Sequence record: MT799840.1
Reading direction: 5' to 3' (one strand)
DNA length: 64,000 bases
Part shown: piece after piece, positions 20,043 to 40,251 of the stretch
Layout of the letters: each line of letters opens with the position of its first letter
Numbering within the stretch: the first letter of the stretch is position 1
Program-made: the position numbers and the translations under genes
The notes under the pieces: model-generated
Told to the model about the DNA's origin: nothing
Databases searched by the model: none
What the model saw: the letters and a program-made list of their open reading frames with translations, nothing else

Positions 20043-20624
20043 ATGTGGCTACAAGGTAGCACGGTGTGGACGAAACAGACCGAAGGTAGCGGGGCACTCA
20101 GCGTATTCAAAGAATCGTTTTCGCTGTCTAGCCTGGCACCCGATCTCGTTGACCGTGTAAAAGAACATTGTCAGGACTTAATCTCACTGGAGCGTTTCCG
20201 TGAAACATTCAGTACCGCACGTAAATTACGTTATAGCGATGCGGTAGAGATGGTAAGACAGATCGAAGAGTTGGGTGAATTCCAGTTCGCCAATGCTGCT
20301 TTACAGCCATTCCTCGTTGCCATGCCGGAATATCGTAAGTTGTATAATGACGGTATGGCGACTGGTTATGAGAATGGCTTTTCGCGGTTGGATGTGTTCA
20401 AAGGGAATGCGTATATGCGTACTGATGACCACTTCCGCGAAGCAACATCGGGCATTTCGACGAAGTACGACGAAGATAAGATTTGGCAATGGGCTACCAA
20501 TGAAGATCGTGCAGTACGACTGAGTCGAATCGATAAAGTGGATATTCAACTTAACTGGGCACGCATGTCAGCTTTCGACTGGGAAGATGGTGATCCCTGT
20601 TCGGAACTTGGCGCGACGTGTTAA
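20043..20624 (+). CDS. Conserved phiKZ gp59-like core protein
   Basis: 193-aa ORF, AGGAG RBS, core synteny after nvRNAP beta-prime N. Confidence 0.7.
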   Translation: MWLQGSTVWTKQTEGSGALSVFKESFSLSSLAPDLVDRVKEHCQDLISLERFRETFSTARKLRYSDAVEMVRQIEELGEFQFANAALQPFLVAMPEYRKLYNDGMATGYENGFSRLDVFKGNAYMRTDDHFREATSGISTKYDEDKIWQWATNEDRAVRLSRIDKVDIQLNWARMSAFDWEDGDPCSELGATC

Positions 20625-20631
20625 AAAAGAT

Positions 20632-20654
20632 GGGGCTTCGGCCCCTCTTTTTTT
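20632..20654 (+). terminator. Rho-independent terminator
   Basis: GGGGC-TTCG-GCCCC + T-tract. Confidence 0.8.
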
Positions 20655-20706
20655 CTTCACTGGGGGCTGTATGCAGCATCCTACCTTGAATTTGACAGGA
20701 GCTAAC

Positions 20707-21093
20707 ATGATTGCGGTAGGAACCTTATCCACACGTGGCTGGGCACGTACACCCCAGGAAAAGGCGCGTGAGTTGATGAACCATTACACCGAGTCTGGCT
20801 ATAGCCAATCGGTGGTTTATCGTGGGAACATTAAATCACTTGCGTATACGCAAGCTGTGTTTGCACAAGATCCCGATGGGATGGTTGCCCAGATTAAAAT
20901 GGATTTGGAGAACCTCTACGGGAACGTATTTCCTGCTGGCGTTGAAGTTGAAACCAGCTGGGAGTTTTTAAAAGATTCAGATGTGCGTTACCGCATCTTC
21001 ATTAGTGTCCGTGTGCAAGAAGTTGTAGACGGTGAATGGTACGATGTTGAGCGGTACGTGGATACCGAGTCGAGTGCGATTGAGGATATGTAA
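20707..21093 (+). CDS. Conserved hypothetical protein (possibly T4 gp25-like fold)
   Basis: Start reassigned to MIAVGTL (AGGA RBS; TATG motif at 20670). The fold is a guess from the C-terminal helix + two strands. Confidence 0.65.
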   Translation: MIAVGTLSTRGWARTPQEKARELMNHYTESGYSQSVVYRGNIKSLAYTQAVFAQDPDGMVAQIKMDLENLYGNVFPAGVEVETSWEFLKDSDVRYRIFISVRVQEVVDGEWYDVERYVDTESSAIEDM

Positions 21094-34138: not shown

Positions 34139-36883
34139 ATGGTAGAAATTCAAATGACTTACACGAGTATGGGGGTACGGGTTGAAGTCCCTATCCGCCA
34201 GGCTGAAAGGGCCATACTCGCGTGGGCCGAAGAGAATATGCACGCCCCAAAGATGGGCAAGCAACATGGACGAATAACTACGGAACGCGGTGACGCGTAC
34301 TACGCCCACATTCCGTCTTTAAGGACATTCATTTTCCATAAAGTGTTCGCTGAGAAGATTAAACATATCCTCCAACGCGCAGCAATTGAATATGCTTTTC
34401 AGTACAAGCTTACAGAGCACCATCCCGAACGTGCAGAACCTTATAAGTGCACGTTTGATAATTACGGATTCAAGATGGAAGAGACAGACCCAGAGTCGCG
34501 TTTCTATTATCAGAATGAAGTCGTAGCCGCCGCAACAGATCCATCGCGTTCACAAACGGTTTTCGCGATACAAACAGGAAGAGGAAAAGCTCTCGCGCAG
34601 GGTACGCGTGTGCGTGTACCGGGTGGTTGGAAGAACATTGAGGATATACAGCTAGGTGATTACGTTACGGGGCGTGACGGAAAACCAGCAATGGTCTCTG
34701 GAGTGTTCCCACAGGGTGTGGTTGACCTGTATCAGGTGACGTTTTGGGATGGTAGGAGTGTTGACGTATGTGGCGAGCACTTGTGGCAATCTTTTTACGT
34801 CAACACCACCGAAAAACGCCGTTGGGGTGTTCGTGATACTCTGGAAATGAAGCGTTTAATTTCGATGCCTAATCCACGGGTATACATCCCATTACCAGAA
34901 CCAGAGGAAATGCCAGCTAAGGATTTTGTCATTCATCCGTATTTGCTCGGTATCCTCTTGGGTGATGGCTCCCTATCGATGCCGGGCGTTTTATACACCA
35001 AAGGCGATGTGGAGATTCGTGACCGTGTTGCTGAGGTCATGCCCGCTGGACATGCAATCCATGATTCATCGTACAGCGATGGGATAACGAAGTGCATCTC
35101 TTGTCCCGGTGGTGTTAACCTTGTCCGCAGAGAGCTTGAGCGGTTAGGGTTAATCGGCTGCAGGTCTTGGGAAAAGTTCATACCTGGAGATTACTTCGAA
35201 ACGTCCATCGAACAACGGTGGGAATTGTTGCGCGGATTGATGGATACTGACGGTACTGTGGATAAGGATGGTGGTACGCCTTCTTTCTGTTCCACCAGTA
35301 AAGAATTGGCTTTAGGTGTTCAGGAACTTGTGCGGTCTTTAGGAGGGATTGCAACACTACGCGAGAAACGTCCGTTCTTCACACACAACGGCGAACGTCG
35401 TGAAGGTCGTTTGGCTTATAACGTCTTCATCCGTCACAAAACACCATCGAAACTGTTCCATCTTCCAAGGAAGAAAGAACTGTGTCGTGATAACGGACAA
35501 TACACCGATATACTGAAACTCCGTGTTAAGTCTATCGAACCCATTGGTCGTGATCTTGCCACGTGTATTCGTGTCGAGAACGACGATGCGTTGTTTGTGG
35601 TGGACAAGTGGATTGTTACGCACAACACCAAGACCTGTATGAAGTCGATGGTTAAACGGGGAACCCGTACCGCATTGATTCACCGTCCGTCGTACGTTCC
35701 CAAATGGCTGTTTGACGTCTGTGATGATGAAACAGGACTTCGTATACTTCGTGACGAGGTGTTAGTTTGTACAGGCGTACAGGCGATTTACGACGCACTG
35801 GAGATGGGTAAGTCGGGAGAGCTAGATAGTCGTGGTATTAAGGTAATAATCCTCCCCACGGTCTCTCTACAGCGTTTCCTGAAGGAGTACATTAACACTG
35901 CTGCGACTAACCCTGTGGACCTGGATACGTTTTATGATGTTCTGGGTGTGGGTCTGGTGGCGATGGATGAGGTGCACGAGCATTTTCACCTCGTTTACAT
36001 GGCTGGTATAATGTTGAACCCGCCTGCATCGATAGAAATGTCTGCAACTCTTAAACCGGGTAGCAGCAAAGCGTTTATCGCGGAGCGGTATTTAGAACGG
36101 TTCCCAATGGAGTACCGAATCAGTATTCCAATCATTCCGGTGGTTGACGTGAAAGCGTTGTACTATCGACTGGATGATAAGAAGTTTGCGTGGTGGGCAT
36201 CGAAGATGACGCCGTATAACCACAAACTCTTCGAAGGGAAGCTGATTAAAGAGAACTTGCATTTAGAATACGCAAACATGATCTGGGATGTGGTTGAGAA
36301 ATCGTTCCTTAAACGGTATCAACCTGGCCAAAAATGTTTGATACTCTTTGCTACGGTAGCGATGTGTGAGTTCTTTACCGAGTATGTGAAAGATAAGTTA
36401 TCGCGTGACCCTGTATTCCATCCACTGATGGTGGCGAAATATAATGCAGGCGATTCGTATGACGACTTTATCCAAGCAGACTTCTCTATCTCCACACCGG
36501 GGAAAGCGGGGACTGCGGTCGATAAACCTGGGTTGGTACACATGTACATTTCAACCCCGGTAGAAGACCAGCAACTGAACGAACAGATGGCCGGTCGTCC
36601 ACGTAAGATTCTCCACAACGAGTGGGGTGAAATAGACCCAACGGTGTGGTTATTCCATGCGTATAACGTACCGAAGCATTGCAATTACCTGAATGCCCGC
36701 CAGAAATCACTCAAGGATGTCGTATTGTCGTTCCGTATCGCGACATCCCCCTACGTTGTAAGGAAATCACATGCTCACTCCGCCGCGTCCAGCAGAGCCA
36801 CTGCCACCCTACATCGGAATGACTTTAGCAAGTTTTCTCGAAAACGTTCTAAAGGCGTATCCCGGCGTAGAAGACGTCGCTAA
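34139..36883 (+). CDS. SF2 (DExH) helicase with intein (phiKZ gp75-like)
   Basis: Walker A QTGRGK|T is split by the intein. Also DEVH Walker B, MSAT motif III and QMAGRPR motif VI. Start at ATG 34139. Confidence 0.9.
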   Translation: MVEIQMTYTSMGVRVEVPIRQAERAILAWAEENMHAPKMGKQHGRITTERGDAYYAHIPSLRTFIFHKVFAEKIKHILQRAAIEYAFQYKLTEHHPERAEPYKCTFDNYGFKMEETDPESRFYYQNEVVAAATDPSRSQTVFAIQTGRGKALAQGTRVRVPGGWKNIEDIQLGDYVTGRDGKPAMVSGVFPQGVVDLYQVTFWDGRSVDVCGEHLWQSFYVNTTEKRRWGVRDTLEMKRLISMPNPRVYIPLPEPEEMPAKDFVIHPYLLGILLGDGSLSMPGVLYTKGDVEIRDRVAEVMPAGHAIHDSSYSDGITKCISCPGGVNLVRRELERLGLIGCRSWEKFIPGDYFETSIEQRWELLRGLMDTDGTVDKDGGTPSFCSTSKELALGVQELVRSLGGIATLREKRPFFTHNGERREGRLAYNVFIRHKTPSKLFHLPRKKELCRDNGQYTDILKLRVKSIEPIGRDLATCIRVENDDALFVVDKWIVTHNTKTCMKSMVKRGTRTALIHRPSYVPKWLFDVCDDETGLRILRDEVLVCTGVQAIYDALEMGKSGELDSRGIKVIILPTVSLQRFLKEYINTAATNPVDLDTFYDVLGVGLVAMDEVHEHFHLVYMAGIMLNPPASIEMSATLKPGSSKAFIAERYLERFPMEYRISIPIIPVVDVKALYYRLDDKKFAWWASKMTPYNHKLFEGKLIKENLHLEYANMIWDVVEKSFLKRYQPGQKCLILFATVAMCEFFTEYVKDKLSRDPVFHPLMVAKYNAGDSYDDFIQADFSISTPGKAGTAVDKPGLVHMYISTPVEDQQLNEQMAGRPRKILHNEWGEIDPTVWLFHAYNVPKHCNYLNARQKSLKDVVLSFRIATSPYVVRKSHAHSAASSRATATLHRNDFSKFSRKRSKGVSRRRRRR
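34589..35626 (+). mobile_element. Class 3 intein with LAGLIDADG homing endonuclease (346 aa)
   Basis: Begins ALAQGTRV and ends WIVTHN|T. Block B CGEHLW, block F ATCIRV, and LLGILLGDGS / LLRGLMDTDG endonuclease motifs. Confidence 0.92.
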
Positions 36884-37214: not shown

Positions 37215-37835
37215 ATGAGTCGTCGCAAAAAGAAACCCGCTTATAACCCACGTAAAGACGCCCGCGATTTCGTCAAGGCGATGATGCAGTCTGTGTTGAA
37301 AAAACAAGCTGTGTTTATCGAAAGTACCGAATTCCTGTCAGGCAGAATTGATCGGGAGCGTGAAGTAACTGAAGCCATTACGCACGAAGAGCTGAAAGCC
37401 TTTACGTTGAAAGCGCTGGATGAAGCACAGGCGGCTTTCCTTGGCATGTGTCAGCAAGGCAAAGAGCTGTTCGGTAAACTGATTGTTGAGGCAGATGCTA
37501 AGGCTGTGCCGGTGTTTGACATGCTGAACGATAACAGCAAAACGTGGAAAGAAATCAAAGACCAGTTCCACGTCGACCACACCGAACTGTCTTTGATTGA
37601 CCAGCGGGCGAATATGCTCGCGATGGATATCCAGGGCACCAGTATCGAAATCTTCTCTACGTATAACGCGAAAGTGAAGTTCGTGAAGCAGGCGCTGAAT
37701 AACGGGCATACCGTGGAACAAGCCGAAGTTCTGTTGGCCGAAGCTCTGGCTAATAATTCGAAAGAACTCCCTAAAAATGCCATCGTCGATCACAACGACG
37801 TTGTAGTAGAAACCGAGGAAGCGGCACATGTCTGA
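37215..37835 (+). CDS. Conserved helical hypothetical protein
   Basis: Start at MSRRKKKP (AAGGA RBS). Confidence 0.75.
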   Translation: MSRRKKKPAYNPRKDARDFVKAMMQSVLKKQAVFIESTEFLSGRIDREREVTEAITHEELKAFTLKALDEAQAAFLGMCQQGKELFGKLIVEADAKAVPVFDMLNDNSKTWKEIKDQFHVDHTELSLIDQRANMLAMDIQGTSIEIFSTYNAKVKFVKQALNNGHTVEQAEVLLAEALANNSKELPKNAIVDHNDVVVETEEAAHV

Positions 37836-39798
37836 GATCCAAGATCAGCGCCCGGGTAATGCCCGTCGCCCTAATCCCGACCAGCCAGCCCCTGTGGCGG
37901 CTGCTACCCAACAAGAGATGATTCTTCCGACCGTGTCCGATGACGCGAATCCGGATGCAATCATCATGGCTATTAAACAAGCCAACCCCGATTTTTCTTT
38001 TGCCCGTGCAGAGGAAGTTTATCACCAACACTATCATCGTCCGGAGCCTAAGCTTGAGCGTCCGACGTTTGTAGAAGAGGCGTTGCCTGAACCTGCTGCG
38101 CCTGTACCACCGGCACCTCAGACTTTTGCTGAACAGGTGCAGGAGCACCTACATCGTGCCCCGGAACCGGTGGTAGAGAAAGCGCCTGCGGTAGAACCTG
38201 CTCCGCAGCCAAAAGCTCCGGAAGCGGTTGCACCGGCACAGCCGGCTGTAAAAGAAATGGAAGACGCAGCACCGAAGGTTCCGGAACAACAACAGATGCG
38301 TGAGATTGACTTCGGTAATACCCATTTAGCTGAAACCGCCGAAATGGGTGAAGATGAAGCCGATCGAATTCTGACACAGTCGAAGATGTTGATTGGTCTG
38401 AAACAAGACCCTAACATCATTGCAGACTCCCTGCAAAAGTTCCTCGGTAATATTAAACGTTCACCGAAAGACGGCCGGCTGCTATTCGAAAGCCCTGAAC
38501 AGCAACAGGTTTACGACGACATCTATCGTGCTTTGAACATGACCCCGCCACGTCTACAGGACGGCGTACCGGCATTCGCGGGTGCACTGGACCGTGGTGA
38601 TACCGCTTGGGAACAGCGCGTGATGTTGCCGGACGGCAAGGCATCTGGTGCTATTGCACCGCGTGACAATATGCACACTGGCGCGCTGGCTGCTTTGCGT
38701 CGTGTACGTAAGTCGGGTATTCCGAACATGGTTTGGTTGCCGGCCACAGGTATCTACGTGGGCTTCCGCGCACCGCATGAACGTGACCTTTGTGACTTCG
38801 ACATGCGTCTAACGCTGGAAACTGCGACCATCGGTATGCAGACCTACGGATTGATGCTGTCGTCGTCTTCTGGCGTGTACATGCGCCACATGGTTGAATT
38901 CGCACTTCAGTTTGTTACCGAAGCAACCATCGATTGTGCGGGTAACGATCTGCGTACGGTGCTGTTGGATACCATTGATCTGGCTGACTACTGGCTGGTT
39001 ATTCTGGGTCCGTTGCAGGCGAAGTGGCCGTCTGGTATTCCATGGACGCTGATGTGTGGCGAAGACGGCTGCAACCAGCAGGAAGATGTGAAGCTGAATA
39101 TCGCACGCTGTATCCGTTTCGGTTCCGGTCTGTTTAGCGACCTGCAGAAACAACTGTGGGCACGTCAACGCGGTACTGAGCGTCCAGTGATTTCTATTGC
39201 AGAACAGCGCGAATATATCGCGGCGCATCAGGTTGACCCATCCTCGGTATTTGAATACCACGACGTGCGTGTTGAATTTGGCCGTTCTACCCTGGGTAGC
39301 TTCTTTGACTCCACTGAGAAGTGGATTGAAGACGTTAACGCGTCAACTACGGCAGCGCTGTCTGAATTTGCTACCGAGCGTGAACGTGAATCCCATATGC
39401 GTTTAACTGCAGAAGCCCGTCGCTTAACGCGCTACGCTCACATGGTGAAATCTATCACCGTTAATGAGCAACGTGAAGTAAACGGTGAAATGCAGGTTAT
39501 CCCACAAACTGAAACCGACACAGCGAAAATCGTTGAGATGCTGGAAGAGCTGTCTTCCGACCGCATCTACGTTGGTCAGTTTGAAAACGCGATTGCTGAA
39601 TACAACGAACGTACACGTTTAGCGGTATTCGGTTACATGGGTAAACGCTGCCCGGCGTGTGGTAAAACACACGGCGAGAAAGACGGTCTGTATCGCGGTA
39701 TTGTTACCATCAGTCCGGACAGGGTTTTTTTCGTGCTCTCTCGAGTGGTGTCCGAGATTCAGAAATTCTTGCTGGATCAATACGCCGATATTGGCTAG
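37828..39798 (+). CDS. Zn-finger protein, candidate tail/baseplate assembly chaperone
   Basis: Pro/Ala/Glu-rich N-terminus, then WLPATGIYVGFRAP, LMCGEDGC and KRCPACG, resembling T4 gp26/gp51-type chaperones. Ends just after a T7 run. Confidence 0.7.
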   Translation: MSEIQDQRPGNARRPNPDQPAPVAAATQQEMILPTVSDDANPDAIIMAIKQANPDFSFARAEEVYHQHYHRPEPKLERPTFVEEALPEPAAPVPPAPQTFAEQVQEHLHRAPEPVVEKAPAVEPAPQPKAPEAVAPAQPAVKEMEDAAPKVPEQQQMREIDFGNTHLAETAEMGEDEADRILTQSKMLIGLKQDPNIIADSLQKFLGNIKRSPKDGRLLFESPEQQQVYDDIYRALNMTPPRLQDGVPAFAGALDRGDTAWEQRVMLPDGKASGAIAPRDNMHTGALAALRRVRKSGIPNMVWLPATGIYVGFRAPHERDLCDFDMRLTLETATIGMQTYGLMLSSSSGVYMRHMVEFALQFVTEATIDCAGNDLRTVLLDTIDLADYWLVILGPLQAKWPSGIPWTLMCGEDGCNQQEDVKLNIARCIRFGSGLFSDLQKQLWARQRGTERPVISIAEQREYIAAHQVDPSSVFEYHDVRVEFGRSTLGSFFDSTEKWIEDVNASTTAALSEFATERERESHMRLTAEARRLTRYAHMVKSITVNEQREVNGEMQVIPQTETDTAKIVEMLEELSSDRIYVGQFENAIAEYNERTRLAVFGYMGKRCPACGKTHGEKDGLYRGIVTISPDRVFFVLSRVVSEIQKFLLDQYADIG

Positions 39799-39842
39799 AC
39801 CAGGAAGACGTTCCGTCCGAGCAAATCATTACAACGCTCAAG

Positions 39843-40214
39843 ATGGATACCACCTCTCTCTTCAAGCAGCGTAGCACACGTCCTATTACGTATCAGGAAG
39901 CCCATAACGAGCTTCTGGAAGCGTATGACCGTACACTGGCTCTTAATACCGGCGATCATCAGGTAGGGTTGTCGGATTTTGAAAACCCGGTATACGGTAG
40001 TCTTTACGATATCTGGTACGCCACTTACTTACGTGAAGAGGTCGGTGAAAACTACCGGATGTCGATAGACGAGTTCCTCGACCGCCCCCGCTGGCAGATA
40101 CTGCTGATGCTCGACAATATCCGTCGTCGCAAAGCGATTATCGCCAAAGCCGGCGAGCAGGTGGCAGGTGAACGTGCGTTAAAGGAGCTGGAGAAAGATC
40201 TGACGGGACATTAA
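39843..40214 (+). CDS. Small protein or -1 frameshift extension of the upstream ORF
   Basis: Frame is open from 39666, with no SD before ATG 39843. YRMSIDEFLDRPRWQ resembles the GT/gp51-type C-terminal chaperone motif. Confidence 0.7.
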   Translation: MDTTSLFKQRSTRPITYQEAHNELLEAYDRTLALNTGDHQVGLSDFENPVYGSLYDIWYATYLREEVGENYRMSIDEFLDRPRWQILLMLDNIRRRKAIIAKAGEQVAGERALKELEKDLTGH

Positions 40215-40222
40215 TAGAAATT

Positions 40223-40251
40223 CGGGGCTTCGGCCCCGTTTTCTTTTTTTT
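40223..40251 (+). terminator. Rho-independent terminator
   Basis: CGGGGC-TTCG-GCCCCG + T-tract. Confidence 0.85.

Follow-up and report, generated by a model that had tools for sequence, protein, structure and literature searches.

Does the region between positions 37,828 and 40,214 of the stretch under study encode two proteins from two genes, or two proteins from one? The window is a 64,000-nucleotide (nt) stretch of record MT799840 from Salmonella phage JN03, an SPN3US-like Seoulvirus and nucleus-forming jumbo phage. Two open reading frames (ORFs) follow each other at this locus, both annotated as hypothetical proteins. ORF 37828-39798 is SPN3US_0039 and ORF 39843-40214 is SPN3US_0040; the 2,387 bases spanning both are 99% identical between JN03 and SPN3US. 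A sequence-only reading of the window had proposed that a programmed −1 frameshift fuses the first ORF, which codes for 656 amino acids (aa), to the second. This claim is strongly supported by comparative evidence. The two ORFs very probably form one recoded gene with a programmed −1 shift of some kind at a run of thymines. A shift by the ribosome at the heptamer T_TTT_TTC, giving products of 656 and 795 aa, is the mechanism we moderately favour.

Homology and gene order identify the 656-aa ORF as the JN03 copy of a Chimalliviridae core gene, cg18, that is, as a member of the phiKZ gp77 family. In tblastn searches, the JN03 protein matched PHIKZ077 with an expect value (E) of 4e-16 across 87% of its conserved domain, and this domain was found in 237 phage records, including PHIKZ077. 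Matches in PHROGs were PHROG 8054 (E 0) and PHROG 4585 (E 5e-66). An exhaustive profile search gave 1,175 family representatives. Its listed members have 279-705 aa, all less than the fused length of 795 aa, and full-length members end near the C-terminus of the profile. Homologs retrieved from protein databases have 389-706 aa, so that none of them is a long single-ORF form. The gene lies beside gp78-like, gp79-like and gp80-like (virion RNA polymerase) genes, and the order is the same in phiKZ, RAY and pVa-21. The supplement of PMC10299810 equates phiKZ gp077 and RAY gp267 with core gene cg18, a hypothetical protein. The 656-aa protein has a conserved domain of ~400 aa with four near-invariant cysteines, and its last 21 residues are encoded 3' of the slip site. 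Its N-terminal ~240 residues (37828-38550, + strand) are rich in proline, alanine and glutamate, of low complexity and variable in length among relatives. Distant family members (~450-560 aa) mostly have no such N-terminal part.

The frame of the 656-aa ORF, here the 0 frame, reads AGG GTT TTT TTC GTG near its 3' end, with GTT TTT TTC at 39724-39732. The perfect in-frame X_XXY_YYZ heptamer of the sequence-only reading is present, inside a run of seven thymines (T7). The −1 frame is open as described: the last upstream stop is at 39663-39665, the frame is open from 39666 to 40211 and closed by a stop at 40212-40214, and it is the frame of ORF 39843-40214. It contains no ATG, GTG or TTG between 39666 and the ATG at 39843. 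This ATG is not preceded by a Shine-Dalgarno-like purine run, and codon counts confirmed the product sizes of 656 and 795 aa, the latter given before as approximate. The chance of such an arrangement was evaluated with the 33 canonical X_XXY_YYZ heptamers that are in frame in window ORFs of at least 150 aa. The open −1 stretch after the heptamer has a median length of 7 codons and is 50 codons long in the runner-up and 162 codons long at 39726. Only the heptamer at 39726 has a −1 frame reaching at least 50 codons beyond the 0-frame stop. The frame arrangement at this site is far beyond chance. The only other in-frame TTTTTTC of the window, at 20649 (ORF 20587-21093, + strand), was rejected as a recoding candidate: its −1 frame closes after 18 codons.

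Table 1. Features of the cg18 locus in phage JN03 (positions in the window).
Feature	Position	Strand	Evidence or remark
Gene of 206 aa 5' of the large ORF, PHROG 8045, positional counterpart of phiKZ gp78	37215-37835	+	8-nt overlap with the start of the 656-aa ORF; synteny kept family-wide
0-frame ORF, 656 aa, homolog of SPN3US gp39, phiKZ gp77 and cg18	37828-39798	+	Homology searches, AlphaFold2 (AF2) model
CCGGAC, two codons with invariant synonymous sites just 5' of the slip site	39715-39720	+	Complementary to GTCCG 39750-39754
T7 run plus C with in-frame slippery heptamer T_TTT_TTC (39726-39732) on the conserved Phe-Phe; proposed recoding site	39725-39732	+	
Predicted −1-frame continuation after the slip, 160 codons plus stop, giving the 795-aa trans-frame product	39732-40214	+	
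Putative dual-coding overlap of the 0-frame tail and the start of the −1 extension	39733-39798	+	0-frame tail is a C-terminal helix in a confident model
5-bp hairpin TCTCG/CGAGA (39739-39743/39753-39757) with 9-nt loop GTGGTGTC	39739-39757	+	6 nt after the heptamer
Stretch annotated as intergenic	39799-39842	+	−1-frame coding periodicity, no start codon
Annotated ORF, 123 aa, SPN3US gp40 homolog; read as distal part of the −1 extension	39843-40214	+	
GATACCAC, proposed pseudoknot partner of the hairpin loop	39846-39853	+	Complementarity −10.5 kcal/mol
Terminator-like GC hairpin and T tract	40223-40248	+	Directly 3' of the −1-frame stop

Close relatives comprised nine further GenBank phages (Seoulvirus, Erskinevirus, Machinavirus and Wellingtonvirus) and eight metagenome contigs with a large protein of 41-59% aa identity. 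In all of them the heptamer is identical and in phase, at a constant 23 codons upstream of the 0-frame stop. The open part of the −1 frame begins 6-47 codons upstream of the heptamer and extends 153-165 codons beyond it. All 17 share the three heptamer codons, apart from the first, which is GTT or CTT. Third positions of the 0 frame have a mean entropy of 1.31 bits over the 110 upstream codons, compared with zero in the three heptamer codons. Upstream of the T run, codon periodicity follows the 0 frame. Where both frames overlap, periodicity is lost and the nucleotides are very highly conserved, the pattern that dual coding would leave. Protein-level conservation extends to the 0-frame tail, and the 0-frame stop also keeps its position. 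In the 44 bases between the two annotated ORFs, the entropies of −1-frame codon positions 1/2/3 are 0.79/0.45/1.53, compared with 0.61/0.35/1.26 in the annotated small ORF. The bridge equals the small ORF in its −1-frame periodicity. The position of ATG 39843 is occupied by CTA, TTG, CTT, CTC or CTG in most close relatives; JN03 and its closest relatives do carry the ATG.

Conservation of the heptamer across the Chimalliviridae had been proposed as a check. Genera were sampled one by one, which gave 43 distinct junctions with protein identities down to ~20%. They include phiKZ, three 201phi2-1-like contigs, RAY and a relative (L057), Moabite, PhiEaH1, VP4B, phiKT1019, AhC3_1, Aeromonas D3, BUCTxx100, FLC8, FLC9, Noxifer, pVa-21, EarlPhillipIV and Kwan, and cover phages of Vibrio, Aeromonas, Burkholderia and Stenotrophomonas. 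A run of 5-8 T on a near-invariant Phe-Phe is present in 43 of 43 junctions. The phase is T_TTT_TTY in 38 of the 43, G_TTT_TTY in four and CTT_TTT_A in pVa-21. Phe-Phe is preceded by V, L, T, G, S, N or A, yet in 38 of the 43 the codon of this residue ends in T. In the genes of the window, 27% of third positions are T, and TTT accounts for 37% of the Phe codons.

The −1 frame after the T run is stop-free for 153-177 codons at every junction; stops in the bridge, named beforehand as evidence against the frameshift, are absent from all 43. Many genomes have −1-frame stops 2-17 nt upstream of the run. The gap between stop and run is 12 nt in phiKZ, Moabite, VP4B, AhC3_1 and BUCTxx100 and 2 nt in the RAY relative. 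The first −1-frame ATG comes 35-126 codons after the T run in relatives. The −1 extensions are homologous family-wide (JN03 versus pVa-21, E 2e-12; versus RAY, 7e-5), and their C-terminal ~100 codons form a module that can be aligned across the whole family. In phiKZ, the 87 −1-frame codons before the annotated start of PHIKZ076.4 align from the first residue with a 201phi2-1-like contig (E 4e-10), and the match of the full phiKZ extension to Noxifer begins at residue 2 (E 4e-23). Even in clades with only ~20% identity to the JN03 protein, the −1 frame therefore codes from the T run onward. A long single-ORF form was found neither among 31 homologs nor among the best 150 of the 1,175 family matches.

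These patterns bear on two explanations that involve no recoding. Two separate genes would have the small ORF start at ATG 39843 or at other or non-canonical starts; the T run would be a matter of Phe-Phe codon choice and the upstream opening of the −1 frame incidental. GenBank records annotate two genes, with SEGD1 as the sole exception, the ATG is present in JN03 and its closest relatives, and the annotators of Moabite marked a ribosome-binding site for the downstream ORF. However, the ATG is not conserved and has no Shine-Dalgarno sequence, and in Wellington, Kwan and two further relatives (L016, L034) the first ATG lies 125-126 codons into an extension of ~160 codons. Coding periodicity and protein conservation start at the T run and not at any start codon. 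Stops in the −1 frame are frequent just before the run and absent after it, and the synonymous sites of the heptamer are invariant. Independent initiation is rejected because the bridge appears to be coding, has no conserved start and begins exactly at the T run. A start at 39843 had been named as counterevidence to the frameshift; the lack of conservation of this ATG favours the frameshift instead, and two genes are very unlikely. It is hardly credible that a single 795-aa gene was misread at its homopolymer, or that the gene broke recently. The shift does coincide with a homopolymer, the classic place for a miscall, and the SEGD1 record (L004, KU726251, 1029-3416) has one base more at the locus, where one 795-aa ORF is annotated across both frames. 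SEGD1 nevertheless keeps the same T7 run; its extra base could be a real variant or an assembly error. The two-frame layout recurs in junctions from many laboratories, platforms and metagenomes and over the whole range of identities, and long single-ORF forms are missing among the homologs inspected. A miscall or recent break is rejected because 43 independent junctions share a conserved 0-frame tail and stop.

A shift during transcription would give the same products. The multisubunit RNA polymerase of the phage may stutter on T7 and add one U to some mRNAs. Such programmed transcriptional slippage is a possibility of low but appreciable probability. The feature conserved family-wide is a T homopolymer (5-8 T) without conserved downstream structure. 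Four relatives have a T6 out of the canonical phase (G_TTT_TTT or G_TTT_TTC), and the run is T8 in RAY, its relative L057 and FLC8. These phages transcribe all genes with non-canonical phage RNA polymerases, whose slippage behaviour has, to our knowledge, not been characterised. On the other hand, runs of 5-7 T are shorter than the ~8-9 nt of the bacterial and phage cases known to us. The second Phe codon has stayed TTC in about half of the relatives, where TTT would encode the same residue and make the run longer. Even where the T preceding the first Phe codon contributes a single base, it is retained, and it exactly completes X_XXY_YYZ in 38 of 43 junctions. A ribosomal slip is favoured because the exact heptamer phase is kept in these 38 junctions and about half of the relatives retain TTC. 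The canonical phase and runs as short as T6 fit slippage of tRNAs better than slippage of a polymerase.

A stimulatory RNA structure was part of the sequence-only reading. The arms of the hairpin, the 6-nt spacer, the loop GTGGTGTC and its partner GATACCAC are located as claimed; a role as stimulator is weak, at the level of chance. Both partners of the loop pairing are coding, and only one double-sided change occurs in 16 sequences. The loop has an equally good partner at 40018, and a pairing of the same quality arises in 18.5% of cases when the downstream region is shuffled. Neither hairpin nor pseudoknot is shared with distant clades. In RNAalifold with 16 relatives, the sole pairing is an invariant CGGAC/GTCCG that encloses the slip site. 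The synonymous positions of CCG GAC are invariant in 17 of 17 close relatives; there is no covariation, and the pairing is absent from phiKZ-like clades.

Several observations weigh against a ribosomal slip. The hairpin has only −3.9 kcal/mol, is absent from the minimum-energy fold of 39733-39800 and lies in a region with a local fold z of −0.12. It is broken in three of 16 close relatives (Wellington, Caitlin and one contig), without covariation. In 27 diverse relatives, the 60 nt that follow the T run never exceed upstream windows in stability. Rfam has no match at the locus, and no clear internal Shine-Dalgarno sequence is present at the spacing known from dnaX. Single-sequence folds, RNAalifold, pair counts, window comparison, shuffled duplexes and Rfam revealed nothing beyond chance and thus no convincing stimulator. 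A conserved homopolymer without conserved structure is also the expected trace of transcriptional slippage. G_TTT_TTY in four relatives and CTT_TTT_A in pVa-21 are non-canonical for tandem slippage. The evidence for the frameshift is comparative throughout. Known −1 frameshift sites do not all require a stimulator. The shift at cg18 may run unstimulated, use an element that has escaped detection, or occur in transcription.

In a ribosomal mechanism, most ribosomes would read through T_TTT_TTC and stop 21 codons later, producing the 656-aa protein. A fraction would slip back by one base when the two tRNA-Phe on TTT TTC re-pair with TTT TTT. The slipped ribosomes would read 160 more codons in the −1 frame and produce the 795-aa protein. 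This form would have the same first 635 residues, a different linker and a helical C-terminal module of ~100 aa. We infer the ribosome as the site of the shift, the efficiency of the shift and the need for both products.

The short form looks real, and its tail helix seems to pack on the conserved domain. An AF2 model of residues 240-656, based on a 144-sequence alignment, had a predicted local distance difference test score (pLDDT) of 92.7 and a predicted template modelling score of 0.91. The last helix (model residues 391-414, pLDDT ~90-95) has Phe-Phe at its start. The 0-frame tail is therefore likely a structural element of the short form. The four near-invariant cysteines suggest a metal site. 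The extension was modelled as all-helical with a pLDDT of 57, too poor for a fold search.

Databases gave few hints for a function. Pfam had no match for either ORF, their neighbours, 51 family members (E up to 1) or 24 extensions, and PHROGs provided families of unknown function only. Neither single-protein nor profile searches of PDB sequences produced a significant match, the top ones being an uncharacterised protein (E 0.005) and ribosomal protein uS19 (E 0.24). By sequence search, no relative was present in the solved virion structures of phiKZ or other phages in the PDB. Foldseek with the model of the conserved domain found nothing in the PDB (best E 0.22). In BFVD, it found the family itself, followed by about eight models labelled as T4-like baseplate hub assembly protein, hub subunit or gp26. 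These matches had a probability of 1.0, E of 1.9e-5 to 1.4e-3, template modelling scores of 0.3-0.6 (0.47-0.59 when normalised to the target) and root-mean-square deviations of 8-12 Å. Two GenBank annotators gave the same baseplate-hub label to the gp39/gp77 gene. The predicted likeness to T4 gp26 is remote, has no sequence support and serves as a lead only. Our working guess is a virion-assembly factor with two forms at a fixed ratio. Mentions of gp39 or gp40 were absent from the paper on the SPN3US virion proteome and from the supplements examined with it.

A tail assembly chaperone pair of the lambda G/GT or P2 E/E' type had been the suggested identity of the two products. This identification does not hold, whether judged by sequence, fold, size or gene context. 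Pfam and the PDB have no match, and the best Foldseek match with this label, in BFVD, had an E of 0.45. The short form has 656 aa, and the gene lies among genes for a helicase, an RNA polymerase and a DNA polymerase and not among tail tube and tape measure genes. Only the G/GT-like logic of expression stands: comparative evidence argues for a −1 shift, close to where the first ORF ends, that yields two products with a common N-terminus.

Lambda G/GT and P2 E/E' are reportedly tail assembly chaperones made by frameshifting. As there, the reading frame at cg18 would move by −1 on a slippery heptamer close to where the upstream ORF ends, with short and C-terminally extended forms that share the N-terminal part and are conserved despite divergence across a phage group. 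The lambda site has no obligatory strong downstream structure either. Unlike cg18, with its heptamer T_TTT_TTC and its place among helicase and polymerase genes, the chaperone genes lie beside tail tube and tape measure genes; their proteins are unrelated to cg18, with a short form of ~100-150 aa in contrast to 656 aa. The tau/gamma pair of Escherichia coli dnaX resembles cg18 as a large protein in which a −1 ribosomal shift gives two forms with a common N-terminal body at a set ratio. The shifted product is shorter in dnaX and longer in cg18, and dnaX has a strong upstream Shine-Dalgarno sequence and a downstream hairpin, neither of which is evident at cg18. Programmed transcriptional slippage is said to operate in Thermus dnaX, Shigella mxiE and insertion sequence (IS) elements. 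Like these systems, cg18 has a conserved A or T homopolymer where two overlapping frames meet, and the shift would not require RNA structure. Known bacterial runs usually have at least 8-9 nt, whereas cg18 has 5-8 nt, mostly in exact X_XXY_YYZ phase. The predicted fold of the cg18 conserved domain has a remote likeness to models of T4 gp26-like hub proteins, whose label two annotators also gave to the gene. These hub proteins have ~250 aa, compared with a ~400-aa domain and a long N-terminal extension in cg18, and do not match in sequence. T4 gene 26 makes a second product by internal initiation; we know of no frameshift in this gene.

The surroundings of the locus in JN03 consist of a helicase gene, two small hypothetical genes, the gene of a virion RNA polymerase subunit and a DNA polymerase gene. 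The hairpin and T tract downstream of the −1-frame stop likely mark the end of the transcription unit. A similar motif of GGCCCC and a T run was observed 3' of the locus in several relatives. The helicase gene (34139-36883, + strand) codes for 914 aa and includes Hint and LAGLIDADG homing-endonuclease domains (Pfam LAGLIDADG_3, E 4e-10; Hom_end_hint, E 4e-6), and the SPN3US homolog has 568 aa. The helicases of two metagenome relatives (L015, L019) have the same matches. The insert looks like an intein carried by some members of the group only.

The existing annotation of the locus is heterogeneous. The large gene of PhiEaH1 is unannotated (L042, KF623294, 198-1400). In Wellington (L009, 1731-2174) and RAY (L023, 3017-3565), the annotated downstream ORF overlaps the large one. 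In phiKZ, PHIKZ076.4 (L020, 3790-4032) is annotated to start 87 codons after the T run. About a dozen records of Salmonella phage SPFM (LR5359xx) align at the locus only as 15-36 short pieces with ~97-98% identity, and their predicted proteins are fragmented (P0025, P0028, P0030, P0031). These records seem to be assemblies rich in errors and are unfit for judging frame integrity. A literature search, with many subscription papers outside its reach, turned up no description of frameshifting, whether at this locus or elsewhere in a chimallin-encoding or jumbo phage, in agreement with the guess of the sequence-only reading. It found no study of phiKZ gp77 or SPN3US gp39/gp40; matches to "gp77" concerned the gp77 of other phages. 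A 2025 Annual Review on nucleus-forming phages does not mention such a frameshift. The recoding mechanism is of a known kind, and the family-wide site in a core gene appears to be new.

The phiKZ-like phages (Chimalliviridae) are among the most intensively studied phages, and ~70 core genes define the family. If the recoding is real, all 30 GenBank records inspected mis-annotate the locus: the small ORF is truncated, oddly started, overlapping or missing, or fused in SEGD1. The core proteome would gain a protein of ~700-800 aa that proteomic, structural and localisation work has not looked for. Deep conservation of both forms would argue that their ratio matters and would offer a handle on the function of cg18. 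The locus would add a deeply conserved recoding site without an obvious stimulator and would raise the question of whether the multisubunit RNA polymerases of these phages are involved in the shift. A more speculative and rather doubtful extension is that every nucleus-forming jumbo phage makes two cg18 proteins at a fixed ratio by structure-free recoding, perhaps by stuttering of the phage RNA polymerase, and that the pair is a T4-gp26-like hub or tail assembly factor. If the pair is such an assembly factor, the two-form principle of lambda G/GT would extend to an unrelated protein family in giant myoviruses.

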